A stretch of DNA of 63,784 nt, the filler included, from Choristocarpus tenellus KU-1152 (Eukaryota > Protista > Phaeophyceae): the NCBI GenBank assembly GCA_964200185.2. It is 12 parts of 12 records of this genome, joined end to end, with 100 filler letters (N's around TTAATTAATTAA, not from the genome) between each part and the next. Parts side by side here need not be neighbours in the genome. Positions count along the whole stretch, not along the records: positions 31,854 to 40,571 come from CAXNAD020004409.1; 11 more parts are not named here. The stretch is one strand, 5' to 3'. The stretch's first letter is position 1; every line of letters begins with the position of its first letter. The notes beneath the pieces are model-generated. The model did not search any database. It was given only the letters and a program-made list of their open reading frames with translations, and was not told the DNA's origin. Of the stretch, positions 31,162-40,671 are shown piece after piece. Made by a program: the position numbers and the translations under genes.

Positions 31162-31899
31162 CTACAAGAATGTTGTTCGTTCAACTGTTCTCAAAGTCAA
31201 ACTTGTCTCGACCAATACATTACCATCCTCCAAACAGTAGTTTTGGCGTTAATTTGGTCATGCTATCAACAACAACTTTGGACGAGATTCTCCTCCTTGC
31301 AGCGCTGAAAATCTGTTGATGTGCTCTGTTTAGATTTCTCATTTTTCCTTGGGGTGATACTCTAACTAATGCCTTTCTGCAACATTGCAATAAAGGCTAC
31401 CTGTTGCTCTGTCAACATAATGTCCATACTATCAAGTATTAAAAGGAGTTTCCTCCTTCATTCGCAATCATCTCCTACTCAGCTGGATCTCCAACTCAGT
31501 CAGTTTGAAATATTATGGGGGAAGGGGCGGAGGCAGGAGCAATGTCCTCAAAAGCCAAGGTAACCTAATGATATCTGGGTTTCGGGTTTCGCAGAACCAC
31601 TGACTGTAGTGGAGTTGATTTTCTTTCAGATAAATGGTATAGTTATCCCCAACCTAACCCCCAGCATGAGCACTCTCAAGCACACAGGCACACCCACTGT
31701 ATGTATTGAATGCCACTACTTGCACCACAACATAGGCATGCACAAAGCTCAATNNNNNNNNNNNNNNNNNNNNNNNNNNNNNNNNNNNNNNNNNNNNTTA
31801 ATTAATTAANNNNNNNNNNNNNNNNNNNNNNNNNNNNNNNNNNNNNNNNNNNNACGTTCGGTGTCAGCTTGATGTTGAGCTCAGTCAATGTCTCACTTC

Positions 31900-34200
31900 T
31901 CGCTTTATCAAAAGAGGTACATCAAAAAGGAACGCCTGTAACACCACTACACGTCGTGAGTCCTGAATACGCCCAATTATTACAGCATGGGAAGAATGAG
32001 GGGATCGGGGTTCGGACGTAGCAAAAAAGAATTGAGCCCATTACGGTCAGGATGAGGTGCTACTCAATTATCGGGAATTGGTGGTGATGGAGATACACTA
32101 TAGTGGTGTACACCCCACTACCAACATCACCAATATGCGCAGACATCCCACAGAGGTGGCTCCTCTCTTTGGTCGTTAGGTATTTTTCGCACTTGATGTC
32201 TACAGATGCCTTGGACTGTACACTGTCCCTTACCAAGGGAAAGACTTCCAGCACTACTCAGTTAGGCTGGGCCAGGAATCGCCTCCATCTCCAGCATAAA
32301 GCTGTCACAGCCGCTGTTATTGTGCGGTGGATGTTACCGCTATTCAATCTGGACGCCGAACACCCACTTCCAGTGAGTGGATTCTTCTCTTGCCCTTGTC
32401 TTCCGCGTGGAAGGCTGTTTGCCCTGGTACAAGGGTAATTTGACTCTATAGTGAAAGGACATGACCCATTGTTCTCTCACATTAGGGAAATGCTGATAAC
32501 GCCCTGAGAAGAGGCCTGTTATTTGAGAAAAAATGAGTAAATTTTATCTCAGAAGAACCTTGTTCCTTGAGGATTGAAAAGGCTACCACCTAAAGTCTCG
32601 CGGACTCTTAGAAGAGTCTTCTTCCTTTTCCAAGGTCCTGTACCAGAATCACTTACCTAGTCGACTTGTGCTGAAGGTCCCCGTGGCTTCTCTAGCCAAG
32701 TAAATTAGTGTTTTTATTACCCATGAAGATTGTACCTGAGCCAATCATAGTAGTTATACTGAGAGAATCTGTCCTATCACGTATTTGATAAGGTCGCTAT
32801 ATTTCTTCTCTCTCTCTTCTGTTTTTGTTGCCAACAACGGGGAGTGCAATATTTACTGTTGTGACGTTATAGAAAATCCGTGTATCAAGTTGCAGAGGTC
32901 TGATGATTTTTTTTGCTTTTCAATTCTATATGTTGTGATCTCTTGCACCATTAACAGTACTATGATTACGTTTCCTCTTCAAAGGTTTCAGGGACCTCGT
33001 CAGTCCACCATTTTGAAGATAATAGTCAGACTTGGGATTCCATCGTATCTATTGATCCAAAGTGGTCCTGAAGGCCAAGGACCTGGGACTGGTGATCACT
33101 GGCTCAGATAAAACCGAGTCAAGTTCAGCCTCCTAGCACTGTCTGGGCGTGCCGTTCTTCAGTCAAATTACACTATCAAAGATTTTTATTCAAGGAAGCA
33201 GTAAACCTTCCCTAAAACATAAAATCCTGTCAGATAAAGTTGTGATGCTTAGCATTTTCGGCACTTCATGGAGGTTCTTCTTGTGTGACCCCTGTGTACC
33301 CAGTACATGTTCTTCCTCTCACGATTTACGACTCCTGCCTTACCATTATGTTTTGAATCTTTGCCAGCAATGAGCAACCCTGATTCCGAACTTGAAGGCA
33401 TGGCACAGGTCCTTCAGGATGAGTTGGGAATTCTCATCACAGTCTTGTCCATTCAAAGCGGCAACGTGCACCTTCCGTCTAAGGAGGAAGATATTAGGGC
33501 ATTCCGCAGTCTTGGTTTCTAGATAGGGATTGTCACGAATGCTCGCCGCATTTTGCAACACTGACAATAGACCGGTTTGTGAATTCCACTTGCTGCGCTG
33601 GACTTACTCCCACATACTTAAGTTGCCTTCGTCTTTTCCAGGCATATTGGATCTTTCAACTATTCTTCTTCCAGTGTTTGTACCTAATATGATACCCCTG
33701 TCGATCCTCGTCACGCCTTGAAAATTCGATGGATATTGATAGAAATTCTCTGACTCCGTTAGTACGCTGGGTCAAGAATTCTCTTTTTGTCAATACACCG
33801 GATGAAAATATATTTTTCTCAACGCAACTCATAGTTGGTCTGATCAAACCAGGGACTGAATCTCCACAAAATCCCTGTCCTATAACGTCCGAAACCTAAT
33901 TCAAGAATTGTTAATCTCGCTTGCTTGTAGTGGTGTGAGATGTGGCTCCTTACCACAGTAGGGTCGATGAACTTGGTATAATTTTCTCCTCCAAATTGAA
34001 GAGTTGGTCTCAGATCAGAGAAGATGCGAGAATATATTCCACCACCAGACAATCTCCCACCTTTTTCGTCCTATAAGATAACCTCTTACCCTCAAACAAA
34101 ACATTTGCATTAAAAATGGTAATGTTTGATGTTGCACCGTAATGGTGATTCACCCCAAAATACAATTGTCCCCACCATTGCCACTGGAAGCAGTTAATGG
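31900..34200 (-). mobile_element. Possible heavily decayed LTR-retrotransposon (Ty3/gypsy-like pol) remnant
   Basis: Coding-like composition with many stops and no splice structure; weak RNase H-like fragments (FLAQPN..., KCEKYLTTKERSHL). Weak inference. Confidence 0.25.
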
Positions 34201-35194
34201 AGAACATTCCTACCATTTTGCTTTCCTCACGAATTCTGGATTATTAATATCATTCTTATTTATTCTATGTTTCCATTCCACCCATTCTACTCCTCCCCAC
34301 TGTACCACTTCTTCTAACCAACCAGTGCGAACCCCCTTCGCGACTGATTTCCAGTCACCAACCCCATCTGATGACAAACCAGTGTGACCCCTTCGCCACT
34401 GATTCCCAGTCACCACCATTTTCCACTCCATCCCGCCCTTCAACATTACCCAAACCAACACCGCTCACCACTCCACCTCACCATTCAAGAATACTCTCCC
34501 CCACAACACTTTCCACCACTTTCCGTTTCCCCACACCATTCAACACCACCTAACCCCCCAACACTTTCCAACACTTTCCACTCCCTCACACCACACTCAA
34601 CACCACTCCACAATCATCCAAGAACACCCCGTCATCATCCACTTTATACCTTGCCTTTGAACTAGAAGACATCTACCCCGCTCAAGCTTGACTTCCCCCC
34701 CCAATTCCCCAGCATCCCAGTTGGTCGTGAGCAATCGAAAGGGTGGGTGGGAGGGAGAGATCGATCAGAGATTGTCTTGTTCTAGCCCTTCTTGTCACAT
34801 ACCACCAGCCTCAGGTTTTTCCTTAAGTTCTGACCACTTCTTCCTACCTCGTGCTTCCATCTATCACACATTTCTTTGAACTTCTCTCTTACCTTCTCTG
34901 ACTCCTACTACCCATTCAGTACTCAACTCTTCGTCCACCCTGGTCAAAAATGGACGCCGGCACCCCCCCCCCCCCCACCCCCCCCCCCCCCCGTTCCTCA
35001 CAGCTACTTCACCCTCCTCAATACCATTGTCTCCCGCTCCACNNNNNNNNCCCCCCCCAAATACTTTGACCCCCCTTTGAAATATTTTTTTTAAAACCCT
35101 AGTCAACCCTCTCTTCCCTGTACGTCATTCCTACCAGAATTCTCCTGTCCAAAAAACTCAGATTACTTCATAAACTTCCCCCTTTTCGACAGCG

Positions 35195-35310
35195 TGATAG
35201 TCATATTTCAACCAAGGTATACCTTTAAGATGACCCCCACCTCGAGGATGCACTTCAAGGTCTATTGCTCATACGACATCTGCTTTGCATGTTGAAAGTA
35301 ATATTTGCTT
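35195..35310 (+). repeat. Dispersed repeat G, homologous to ~43862-43978
   Basis: gtgatagtcatatttcaaccaaggtatacctttaagatg...gtctattgctcatac vs gtgatagccaccttccgaccaaggtatacctttaaaatg...gtctgttgcctcatac. Confidence 0.65.
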
Positions 35311-36689
35311 CAAGAAAAAACAGGTGGTTTGAGGGGACCTCGCAAACCCCCCTCATTCACTTTTTTGCTTGTCCACCCTTTCCTGAGTGATCTTGGAAGG
35401 GATTGCTCAACCTGCCGTAGTTGTCGTTCATGTAAACATCAACTCTCTCTCAATATGTAACGAGTTGACAACCCGACCAAAAATGATCCATGCCTCCTCT
35501 CATAAACCATATCTTAAAACTACTTGAGTTGAGCGGTTCAAACAGAATGAGAGCAGAACACTACCTTTTGCTTTTCGCATCACGCCATCAAAGCCACTAC
35601 TGTTCAAACTGGATTCAACGATGTAACCTGTGTCGAACTTCTGGAGTGTGTGATTTATCACAAATACTATTGCGATCAACCTGTGCACCCCGCAACTCCT
35701 TCTGTACGATTTTCCACAGCTAGTTACTACGGTGAAAGAATGCCAAGTTTAACACTGACCCTGCAATTATCAATAATACATACAAGGATAGCTACCACGC
35801 GTTTCAGGTGTTCTACAAATTTGTTACCACAACACCTTCATTCACCTGATCAAATTTGTCTAACCAAAATTTCAACCTGCTTTTAAGAGCACATTTGGCC
35901 CTGTGGAATGACTTAGGTTGTAGTACCCAACCGATTGTTTGAAAATACACCTCTAACGCAAAAGACATGCAAACTAAGTAAATAACTCACCACCATTGGT
36001 ATCCCAACAATGACAACAATTTCGACCCGTTAATTATAGTCTTCCTCACCCCCTCACTCCACCATACTTCCTACTACTACTACTCACAACAACAAAGGAT
36101 ATATATATATATACCCAACAATTTTAATGTATGGTCTAATTTGGATATAGTACGGGACGATCAAAGCAATAACCAGAAAATAGATAGGAGTTGTTGTGTT
36201 TATCTCTGATTTTTTGATGCTATGGAGATGAAACCCCATCCATCTGTCTTACCCATCTCTAGTTTTACTTTCATTAACAAAAGAACTTGTCTTTAAAAGA
36301 AACCTAGATACAGTGGGTAGGATAGTTTGTTTGGAGTTTCCACCTCAAAAACTCAAACACCCATACATGAGAAAGTTAACACTTTGGTGTTCATCATCTG
36401 AATTTTCAGATCAAATGACAGAACAACAACATAGACAAACCACCTTTTACTACTGTTCTAAGTGTTCATTGTCGTTGGTTATCTCGGTATCATTTTACAA
36501 AGTCAGTCATTAACAAAAAAAAATGATACCATCAAATATAGAACAGTATGTGGGGAGATGGAAACGGAGTATTCCAGAATTTTATCATTTTAGGTAGTGA
36601 CCAGTATGACGCTATGGATTTACCTCAATTAGGACAAGAAATCGCAATATTTAATATATATATATATACTATAACTAAATTTTATTATT

Positions 36690-36870
36690 ATGACCTCTGA
36701 TATTTTGTAGATGTATCAGTGGGGAAACAAATATCCTTTCACATCATTCAGATGAGTTAGGGGAAAACCAATGATTCAATATCAGAACTACCGCAAAAAA
36801 CGAATGTAATATATGTATTACTATATGTTATGACTTTGATATTTTGGAGATGTGTGAGGGAAGAAAATCA
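36690..36870 (+). repeat. Short dispersed motif E (~45 bp), clustered copies
   Basis: Consensus atgccctctgacattttgcagatgtgtcagggggaaaccaat; copies at ~36690, 36830, 42594 (+) and 42852, 52671, 52790 (-). Confidence 0.7.
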
Positions 36871-37709
36871 TATATTGTTGTCTCTTTCCCCACACTCTCA
36901 CAAATAGAAAGGACTATAATCGATCTCTTTTATTACTATGACTAATCTATCACATTAATAACTATTTGATTGTGGGTAATTGAAATTTGAATCATATTGT
37001 TGTAAAATAGGGAACAACAAGAACCAAGAAACATATCTTATGGAAGTGTAATATTGTAGAACTATAATCATATAATAAAATAAAAGCCTTCTTGATATGA
37101 GGAAATATCATAACATTTATAGTTTTTCTCAAATATATTTGATGCATTGATTGATGGGTTGAAGACGTTAGATAGTAGAATTAAATATTGGATCATAATT
37201 CCTTATAGATTACAAGAATATTCTAATCGCTATTTGTGGTCAATATAATCAGTGAAATGTGTAGAACATATTATTGAGAATTTGTATGATCAAATTTTAT
37301 TGGTTCTCCTCTCCGGACCTTTTTAAGTAATCACATTTGTATCGTTGATAATATATTAACATTATAATCTAATACTAATAAATCATAGAGTTTTTGTGAG
37401 AACTCCCTCACAGATAATTTTTCCGATGGTATACGGTACAATTACCTGAGAGAGGAATGGCATGGAATTGGAAGAGCCGTTGGTTTTTTCAATAAGAGAT
37501 GAGGGAACACTTGACCAAGAGGTCGTCTCTGCAATGTGTATGGATTCTACCTCCAACCCTCTTTCCGTTCTGCCTTAGCTCTTGACACACAAGAGCCCTT
37601 GAAGTGACCTTCTGGTCGACGGACGCCACTCACAGAACCGGTAAGCAGTGAGGGAGAAAGGTTCCATACCCCCCTCCTGTTGACCGTCCATGAGGTGTTG
37701 TCCCCACGA

Positions 37710-40111
37710 ATGGGCCTAAGCAAGGGAGAGAGTCGTAGAACAGAGACCATGCCGAGTTTCATCAAGATGTTCACTGCACAGCAGAGCAGCAAGCTAAACA
37801 ATACGCACCAAGGCAACCAAAGACCCCCCAAGTCATCGGATCGTACTGATTTTTCTAAAGATCCTCTCGCCCGTGCCCGGAACGAGCTCCCAGGGAGGTG
37901 AGAGGCCACGGCCTGCTCGACCTATCCTCCCTGAAATCATCTACCTATCGCCGTCATAATCAACATTTTGTGATGTGATCAATTTAACATGACCTCCTAC
38001 CCTCCCGAAACTCTCATCAGGAGAACCCCCGAAGCGGCTCGTTCCCTCGAACGTGCACCTTTTCACGCCCAGTCACAGACGGACCTCGTCGGCTACATAG
38101 AAGACACCGGAGGACGTGAAACAGATAATATGCCAAAGCAGGTGAGCGGCGGGGCTAGAATGTAACGTGAGATATGAACACGCCAACTTTGTGCGTGCCT
38201 GCTGCCTACAGCTTTTATGGTCCCTTGTCGTTGTCTCGAAGCCGTTGAGCTTGAGGGAAGACCAGTGACAGGTAGAATGCTAGCTGTCACACATTTCAAC
38301 TTCCTCCCCAGTTCCTGCACATCACTCGTTCGATACATAGTCACGCACTTTGTAGTACTGCACTAACTGAATGCTGATTTCCACCTGCGTCGCCTGGCTG
38401 GCCTCAGTCATCTCATCTTCAGTCATCTCATTTCCAGCCATCTTCTCTTCATAAAGACGTGAACGTACGAAAGGACGTCGCTATGCCACAGAAGGAGAAA
38501 GATCCTGGACTTGACGATGGGCTGGACATTTTGAGGCAAACGCCGGAAAACACGATAGGTCGAACTCTGGTGGTCTCGGGCGAAGTACGTTTCGATAATC
38601 TTCTTCGAATTGATGGTGTTTTCGAGGTGGGTGGGTAGCTTCGCCTGATTTGGGAATATGAGTTCCAGCATTCCAAGGGCTATATCGCCCAGCTAGACAT
38701 CTCCATGTGTATTCACATGATTGTTCAGTGGTTCGAATTTAGAAGCTTAAGGTGATACCTATGTGTGGAGTTCGTTCTCTCATTTCTGATGGTATCTCAT
38801 TTCGTTCTGATAGCCAAGGTAAGCTGCTGCACAAGTGGTTTCGACTGTGACACCAACAAATATGTTGATACTGGTGTGACATGAGCGGAGAAGAAATGAC
38901 TGTCTCAGATATCTTTTTCAGTGATTCTCTCTCATATCAATGATATATATAAACAAAGCTTGCAGTATCACCTACACCCTCGTTTTATCGTTTCAAACAG
39001 TGACCGAAAGGGGTGATTGTGCTGAGCTATCTTTGACAGCGTCTTTCACTCCGACTTACTTCTGCTGCCATCCATTTCCCAGAAATCTGTTGAACCTTTT
39101 TGATTTTGTGTTGTGATCAAGATTGAATCTTCGCATCTATTACTCAGTTCATGATAAACACAACACGGTTGATCCTTCAGACTGGATGAACACCTGCAAT
39201 TATCTAGCACTGGAAAACATTTGCTAGATCATTTTCGGAGAGAACATCTGAACGTGTCGACGTTGCTTTTGAACTTACATTCGGCTTACATGTGGTTGCA
39301 CGGTAAATCATGTGGTTACGCGGTAAATCAAATGCTCGAGGCCACATCAAAACTAGATCCAGCTTGTGAATGGAAATGATACAGTGAAAAAGTCCTGTGC
39401 CTCTACTTTTTTGGTTCAAAAATAACAAAAAACGCCGAGCACAAAGTGTATGCCATCGCAACAATTGTTTTTGATTCACACGAAATACACGGGAACACTA
39501 AAAAGTCCGTATTACTGTTGAGGTGCGACACAAGGCACATACACGTCCCGTTGTAATTTTTTTGTGGATGGTCTGTGGGCTCGATATTCTTCTACGGCCC
39601 CCTGTTGTTCCTCTCTGTTCCTCACGTCTCCCGCCAACTGTATATAGTGAATAAATAGTGCTAACTGCCCCTTTTGTCTATTGCGATTGCCTTGACAAAC
39701 CTTTGTTCACGCCTGTTGTAAATTAGTTTCCCTTGCGACCTTGACGGTTTTCCCCTCGATTACTTTTTTCTTTGTAGTGTGTAGATTGTGCTCTTAGCTT
39801 AGAGTAGTGTTCAATGGGGTGCTTGTTGATGTGGTGAATGTGCAATGGGCGTCTTTTGAGAGAGATTGTGCTGCCGGTGATTGATTGGAGTGCTTTTATG
39901 GTGGGGTTTTGTGTATATTTATTTTATTGTACATGTATTTTATATGCATGCCATTTGAGAAACCGTTCTTTTCCACTGTTCTCTACGCTGGTACTTCATC
40001 GCGATAAAAAAATATTGTTCTTTTTTTCAGGGTGAGCTTATTGGTGTTGGCAGCAACCTGATCATTGGTCCAACTGCAAAGGTGACCAGCAATCTTACAG
40101 GGCTTGAAGAG
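37710..40111 (+). CDS. Bactofilin-domain (polymer-forming cytoskeletal, DUF583/CcmA-like) protein, first four exons
   Basis: Exons 37710 (or 37749)-37897, 38021-38141, 38438-38626 and 40031-40111, GT-AG and in phase. Spliced product includes ENTIGRTLVVSGEVRFDNLLRIDGVFE|GELIGVGSNLIIGPTAKVTSNLTGLEE, matching the bactofilin beta-helix pattern. Confidence 0.85.
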
Positions 40112-40671
40112 GTAAGGTGTACTGGATTTTGGATAAAAATCAATCGACGCGGGGATTGTTACGTTCCAGTCATTGCTGCATTGATAGACATCACCAGGTT
40201 TTCTTGGAGATTACATTAATAGACATGAATCAGTGTTGAAACATTCGAGATATCTGTGACTGTGTGTGTGTGTGTGTAGTGTGTGTGTGTTACACATTTT
40301 TTTTTTATGGGCACAACTTGCGGGACAGAATTCATTTAAAAAATATATTTGGGTGGGATCAACTTCGATGAAAAAAATATTTTTTCTAGATTTTGTGCTC
40401 AACAGAAAACATCTATTGCTCCCCATTCATTGTAGAAATCACAACGAACCCTTTCCTCTGTTGCAGCTTCATCTATAACCTGTTTTATCATCCCAACCGA
40501 ACCTTACGTGATCATGAAGCCCTGCATCCTTTTTTTTTCTTATGTGTCAATGTACACAACCCCCCCCCTGCNNNNNNNNNNNNNNNNNNNNNNNNNNNNN
40601 NNNNNNNNNNNNNNNTTAATTAATTAANNNNNNNNNNNNNNNNNNNNNNNNNNNNNNNNNNNNNNNNNNNN

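Follow-up and report, generated by a model that had tools for sequence, protein, structure and literature searches.

Evidence for a spliced and transcribed bactofilin gene of the brown-algal clade in Choristocarpus tenellus

Choristocarpus tenellus KU-1152 very probably possesses a eukaryotic nuclear bactofilin gene that is spliced and transcribed and that belongs to the brown-algal clade of this family. The window that we analysed is a stretch of 63,784 nucleotides, filler included, assembled from 12 parts of the genome (GCA_964200185.2), and the 5′ two-thirds of the gene are located on one of these parts, the piece at positions 31,854–40,571 (CAXNAD020004409.1). The exons seen on the piece encode an N-terminal motif, a hydrophilic tail of ∼134 residues and then the first 56 residues of the bactofilin domain; we assign what remains of the domain, together with the C-terminal tail, to further exons past the end of the contig.

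The coding parts of the four exons (Table 1) add up to 149 + 121 + 219 + 81 = 570 nt, corresponding to 190 in-phase codons and no stop, as determined by arithmetic and by translation of each exon separately; searches with the gene's own sequence used single exons. Every donor carries GT and every acceptor AG, the latter preceded by pyrimidine-rich tracts. The four phase-consistent GT-AG exons proposed in an earlier note on this DNA are thus borne out, and the peptides quoted there for the boundary between exons 3 and 4 were found exactly at the expected places: ...TIGRTLVVSGEVRFDNLLRIDGVFE closes exon 3 at 38626, and GELIGVGSNLIIGPTAKVTSNL opens exon 4 at 40031. Intron 3 is full of stops, and a continuous bacterial-style open reading frame is absent from the locus, the domain being interrupted by 1404 nt, which agrees with the earlier statement that an ORF track misses it. 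Exon 3 is composite: its first 44 residues complete the tail and its last 29 start the domain (TPENTIGRTL...RIDGVFE).

Table 1. Features of the Choristocarpus tenellus bactofilin locus, in window coordinates.
Feature	Position	Strand	Remarks
Transcribed leader (5′ UTR of exon 1)	37524..37748	+	X3 contigs 11 and 12 span 37524-37895
N-terminal motif M-P-S-F-I-K-M-F-T	37749..37775	+	Hydrophobic doublet, then basic residue; candidate membrane-targeting sequence
Exon 1, coding part	37749..37897	+	149 nt = 49 codons + 2 nt
Intron 1	37898..38020	+	123 nt, GT..AG, donor GTGAGA
Exon 2	38021..38141	+	121 nt; within hydrophilic tail
Intron 2	38142..38407	+	266 nt, GT..AG, donor GTGAGC; joint in X3 contig 13
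Exon 3	38408..38626	+	219 nt = 73 codons
Intron 3	38627..40030	+	1404 nt, GT..AG, phase 0, donor GTGGGT; inside beta-helix domain
Exon 4	40031..40111	+	81 nt = 27 codons; bactofilin domain goes on
Intron 4, start only	40112..40571	+	Donor GTAAGG; contig ends within

The start codon of the MPSFIK product is found in an ACC-ATG context. A further in-frame ATG is located upstream at 37710 (MGLSKGESRRTET...); its product would open with MGLSKG, and its use would put the MPSFIK motif 13 residues in. Of the span 37710–40111 originally assigned to the gene, the downstream end stands, since the donor at 40111 is used (see below), and the upstream end is only this additional in-frame ATG, with MPSFIK beginning at 37749. 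The leader also contains three upstream open reading frames, at 37534, 37540 and 37690, of 14, 12 and 9 codons, respectively.

A tandem repeat with a 15-nt unit (TCAGTCATCTCATCT, 3.2 copies) lies across the acceptor of exon 3 at 38404–38451 on the plus strand and creates three in-frame AG acceptors spaced 15 nt apart, with corresponding exon starts at 38408, 38423 and 38438. The cDNA-like X3 contig uses the first of these, 38407/38408. Two other placements were dropped: the acceptor 38456/38457 is out of phase, and both it and 38437/38438 disagree with the X3 contigs, which join at 38407/38408. Use of the other acceptors in the repeat could give rise to proteins that differ by 5 or 10 residues.

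To assess splicing, we used three public runs of one study (X1, X2 and X3) that contain the stretch, none of which is recorded as RNA. The contigs of X1 and X2 are colinear with the genomic sequence, and the DNA-like contigs of X1 include one of 5143 nt that is colinear with the piece (the longest record of this run is 245 kb). X3 was taken as cDNA-like on two grounds: its contigs skip GT..AG introns, and there is an approximately 100-fold difference in depth between exons and the retained intron, with exon contigs at ∼1000–1800 compared with 14.7 for the single contig that retains intron 3. Joints were assessed by a rule of 31 letters per side, and two X3 joints have shorter sides. The joint 37897/38021 (GT..AG) is carried by an X3 contig that extends 31 letters to one side, and the joint 38141/38408 (GT..AG) by contig 13, which has a 119-letter side. 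The joint 38626/40031, the junction singled out for checking in the earlier note, is present in a 57-nt X3 contig with 27 and 30 letters per side, slightly below the rule; we trust it because the exons on either side are exactly colinear with the family profile and because an intron occupies the same position in Discosporangium.

The transcript also continues beyond the last exon on the piece. A 278-nt X3 contig follows the window as far as 40113 and then continues with 193 other letters; together with the shared GT, these open in frame with VYVLGILVGN (first 30 letters), where relatives have VYVEGILIGD. This continuation demonstrates splicing from the donor at 40111 into a fifth exon located beyond the piece. 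Recovery of the 3′ exons was therefore partial: the start of exon 5 was obtained from the transcript, and a tblastn search of the 460 nt left on the piece did not detect this exon. At the other end of the locus, one X3 contig carries 29 letters ahead of 37524 that match nowhere else in the piece; this loose end may come from an additional 5′ exon outside the piece, from a leader or from faulty assembly.

A weakly supported alternative joint, 37640/38021, is present in a single X3 contig (depth ∼1234), with a GT..AG intron, the donor GTAAGC and a 28-letter side. This joint skips 37641–38020 on the plus strand and thereby removes the in-frame starts at 37710, 37749 and 37767; in the resulting form, stops terminate the frames opened by the upstream ATGs, and an in-frame ATG is next encountered at 38130. 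If real, this isoform would, tentatively, encode a protein lacking the N-terminal motif or represent a non-coding variant.

Assignment of the gene to the bactofilin family was obtained by way of its relatives. None of the exons alone matched Pfam (at E-values up to 10) or NCBIfam, which we attribute to the shortness of the pieces, and phmmer found no match for exon 3 among PDB sequences. Against 1.8 billion representative proteins, the same exon yielded 24 phmmer matches, most of them short genomic fragments ending in ...LLRIDGHFE and two of them full-length proteins: P0006 from Discosporangium mesarthrocarpum (239 residues) and P0019 from EukProt (294 residues). These two score 68.3 and 61.1 bits, respectively, against the Pfam Bactofilin family PF04519 (cut-off 27.9). 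A search started from the Discosporangium protein retrieved further orthologues, in Laminaria, Pylaiella, Ectocarpus, Scytosiphon and Hapterophycus; each of them carries PF04519 and is deposited as 'unnamed protein product'. Over the domain start, exon 3 is 66% identical to the Discosporangium protein (tblastn), and exon 4 is 74–78% identical to brown-algal proteins and at most 56% identical to any other match. The photosynthetic stramenopile named as host in the earlier note fits with these closest relatives.

A family profile (A2) built from nine domains was next compared with the single exons using hhalign. Exon 3 aligned with columns 1–34 (probability 98.5%, E = 3.7e-15) and exon 4 with columns 35–60 (probability 96.9%, E = 1.3e-10). 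Because the two column ranges are adjacent, nothing is missing or doubled at the joint between these exons. In the PDB, this profile in turn found the bactofilins TtBac (6RIA, E = 3e-11) and BacA (2N3D, E = 1e-6). The block LLRIDGxFEG is near-invariant in an alignment of 57 sequences, and the residue aligned to Phe105 of TtBac, which is part of the polymerization interface, is a conserved hydrophobic leucine in the family profile. The reading of the locus as an intron-containing bactofilin gene is thus upheld, its exons being colinear with a family in which full-length proteins exceed the PF04519 threshold.

Intron positions within the domain are shared with Discosporangium, the only genus for which gene structure was compared. 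In the Discosporangium gene (L001), one intron follows ...GHFE (gag|GT) and another ...GLRE (gag|GT); both are of phase 0, and the window gene has introns at both of these positions and in this phase. The next Discosporangium exon opens with gtgtatgtggag, encoding VYVE, and the C. tenellus transcript continues at this point with gtgtatgtgttg. A bacterial contaminant, or a recently transferred and unspliced bacterial reading frame with an artefactual exon model on top of it, would be conceivable for a family that is overwhelmingly prokaryotic and whose closest bacterial relatives here, the Chlamydiales, live inside protists. Yet the shared introns, the X3 contigs that skip introns at GT..AG and the 1404 nt with many stops in place of a continuous reading frame together exclude contamination or such a recent transfer, and the DNA-like X1 contigs, including the 5143-nt one, follow the piece without a break in colinearity. 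We consider the chance of a bacterial origin of this kind to be vanishingly small, and the judgement in the earlier note that contamination is unlikely can be put more firmly. A decaying or truncated pseudogene copy, transcribed but non-functional, might be suspected from a gene that is only partly visible, that has a number of upstream ATGs and that may form an isoform in which the start is skipped. This explanation is very improbable: the frame is open through all four exons, the domain residues are conserved, the transcript runs on into an in-frame fifth exon that matches the family, and exon contigs exceed the contig with intron 3 in depth by a factor of ∼100. A spliced and transcribed nuclear gene accommodates these data best.

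The fold of the domain was examined in an AlphaFold model of the Discosporangium relative. In this model, residues 80–190 have pLDDT values of 95–98, and both tails are of low confidence. The model superimposes onto the TtBac filament subunit (6RIB) with a TM score of 0.92 and an rmsd of 1.2 Å, and onto BacA with a TM score of 0.80; the next structural matches are unrelated proteins. The structure prediction called for in the earlier note, carried out on this relative, hence returned the bactofilin beta-helix, the family fold being a right-handed helix with some six windings. Transferred to C. tenellus, the 56 domain residues encoded on the piece would form roughly two and a half of these windings, and the polymerization interface at the C-terminal end belongs to the ∼40% of the domain that falls outside the window. 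Intron 3, located after ...DGVFE, corresponds to residues 113/114 of the Discosporangium protein and cuts a predicted beta-strand, so that the domain is indeed split by an intron, as had been noticed at the outset.

The part of the protein preceding the domain is of a different character. The exon 1 product opens with MPSFIKMF and is hydrophilic beyond these first eight residues; the ensuing tail has GRAVY values of −1.0 to −1.2, consists to 72–76% of polar, charged, glycine or proline residues and is probably disordered. With its ∼134 residues, it agrees with the long hydrophilic linker that had been described after the start. In bactofilins, the membrane-targeting motif is a hydrophobic doublet, often accompanied by a basic residue, at the extreme N-terminus (bioRxiv 10.1101/617639), and in TtBac this motif mediates membrane binding (Deng et al. 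2019, bioRxiv 10.1101/617639). If translation starts at 37749, the residues Phe-Ile-Lys fit this pattern, making them a candidate membrane anchor by sequence match. The N-terminus differs in detail among the sequences compared, reading MKFLRRESERG in brown algae, MFRRPGKNPL in Chlamydiales and MPSFIKMF in the window, and oomycete-type relatives are devoid of an N-terminal hydrophobic motif. The EukProt homologue P0030 carries an extension (residues 1–147) with a hydrophobic stretch in front of a conserved MKFLRG start; this extension either reflects an error in the gene model or serves as a targeting sequence.

By analogy with the solved bactofilins and with PiBac of Phytophthora infestans, the beta-helix domains of the algal protein would stack end to end to form nucleotide-independent, non-polar filaments. 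The N-terminal motif may tether such filaments to a membrane on its cytosolic side, this side being proposed because the N-terminus is unlike a signal peptide, and the long tails might serve as spacers or interaction regions. Polymerization, membrane binding and a cellular role of the algal protein are accordingly put forward here by analogy with characterized family members. The protein may alternatively possess a true bactofilin fold without being a membrane-bound filament, acting instead as a non-polymerizing beta-helix adaptor or a soluble scaffold in which the N-terminal motif is incidental. Several observations lend this alternative some weight. Polymerization among eukaryotes has been seen for the oomycete protein only, the Ectocarpus homologue having resisted expression; the N-termini of the window and of brown algae share just the hydrophobic-plus-basic pattern, which oomycete-type relatives do not carry at all; and tails of at least 130 residues are unusual among bacterial bactofilins. 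Against it stand the strong conservation of the domain, epitomized by the near-invariant LLRIDGxFEG block across the 57 aligned sequences, the conserved leucine at the interface position of TtBac Phe105 and the close fit of the Discosporangium model to a TtBac filament subunit. We regard a bactofilin fold that does not serve as a membrane-bound filament as rather unlikely.

The named bacterial sequences closest to the algal proteins come from Chlamydiae. All five named bacterial matches to the algal profile (among the best 120) are from Chlamydiales or Chlamydiia metagenome-assembled genomes, namely P0077, P0088, P0096, P0118 and P0135. A scan of prokaryotic reference genomes for LLRIDG[HER]FE returned one locus, in a Chlamydiales metagenome-assembled genome (L002:601-915); resting on one peptide pattern and one locus, it is weak evidence on the bacterial donor. 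Like the algal proteins, the Chlamydiales bactofilins (P0077, P0096, P0118, P0135 and L002), which are the best-scoring named bacterial relatives, contain the LLRIDGxFEG block, and their N-terminal MFRR resembles the MKFLRR of brown algae; identity is ∼40%. In a quick tree, the brown-algal clade was supported (96) and grouped with one EukProt and one MMETSP sequence, Tribonema and the oomycete Lagenidium fell into a second group, and all named Chlamydiae into a third. On the bacterial side this tree comprised Chlamydiae as the sole phylum, and it establishes neither a particular donor nor a single stramenopile origin.

Within this sampling, these similarities may point to a chlamydial-type source for the algal bactofilins. 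A more elaborate scenario would derive the brown-alga-type proteins from a chlamydial-type gene acquired before the divergence of brown algae and their nearest relatives, with the bacterial membrane anchor retained (as MFRR in Chlamydiales, MKFLRR in brown algae and MPSFIK in the window), and with the 37640/38021 splice generating an anchor-less isoform. We consider this combination of events unlikely; if it were true, the splice would constitute a switch between membrane-bound and free filaments.

The locus is neither the first eukaryotic nor the first algal bactofilin. Bactofilins of stramenopiles and ascomycetes, including Ectocarpus D7G0L1 and with a patchy occurrence in pelagophytes, were reported by Deng et al. 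(2019, bioRxiv 10.1101/617639), who propose horizontal transfer from prokaryotes; in the same study, expression of D7G0L1 was attempted unsuccessfully, and PiBac is the sole eukaryotic bactofilin with demonstrated filaments (bioRxiv 10.1101/617639). The halofilin paper of 2024 restates the eukaryotic occurrence, functional studies being confined to bacteria (PMC11459167). In Tribonema, one protein already bears the annotation 'polymer-forming cytoskeletal-domain-containing'. The novelty attached to the gene in the earlier note was consequently overstated, given the stramenopile cluster published in 2019 and the brown-algal orthologues that are already annotated, albeit as unnamed proteins.

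Comparison with known family members nonetheless defines the position of the gene well. It shares with the brown-algal proteins (P0006; P0025–P0029; D7G0L1) the sequence identities given above for exons 3 and 4, a candidate hydrophobic-plus-basic motif at the N-terminus, a long hydrophilic tail and a single bactofilin domain, and with the Discosporangium gene the positions and phases of the introns within the domain. Unlike the domain, the tail sequences are unrelated to those of the brown-algal proteins, and MPSFIKMF stands against their MKFLRRESERG; the overall divergence is about that between Discosporangium and other brown algae, so that the source may belong outside the core brown algae. 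PiBac (PITG_07992 / D0N980), whose mRNA increases around sporulation, is likewise a stramenopile nuclear bactofilin, consisting of one PF04519 domain and disordered tails, but its group, represented by Lagenidium P0038, is separate from the brown-algal clade in the tree and has no N-terminal hydrophobic motif. With TtBac (6RIA/6RIB) and BacA (2N3D), the family of the window gene has in common the domain profile, the fold as modelled for the Discosporangium relative and the presumed logic of the N-terminal motif. Bacterial bactofilins comprise 100–200 residues with short tails and no introns, whereas the algal gene has a ∼134-residue tail and at least four introns. The locus leaves existing knowledge of the bactofilin family unchanged; it adds an algal member with splicing evidence, with introns conserved in an early-branching brown alga and with a candidate membrane anchor, and is thereby reasonably well suited to exploring the role of a bacterial-type filament in a eukaryotic cell.

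The remainder of the piece yielded few additional features. An Rfam search of the piece returned no match, and the larger upstream open reading frames have no match in Pfam. A strongly C-rich tract at 34250–35250, with a GC skew down to −0.76 and open reading frames that likewise lack a Pfam match, holds a 55-nt repeat (34499–34606), a poly-C run (34963–34992) and an assembly gap of N (35043–35050). Within intron 4, a (TG)14 microsatellite is located at 40261–40290, and the public contigs break there.
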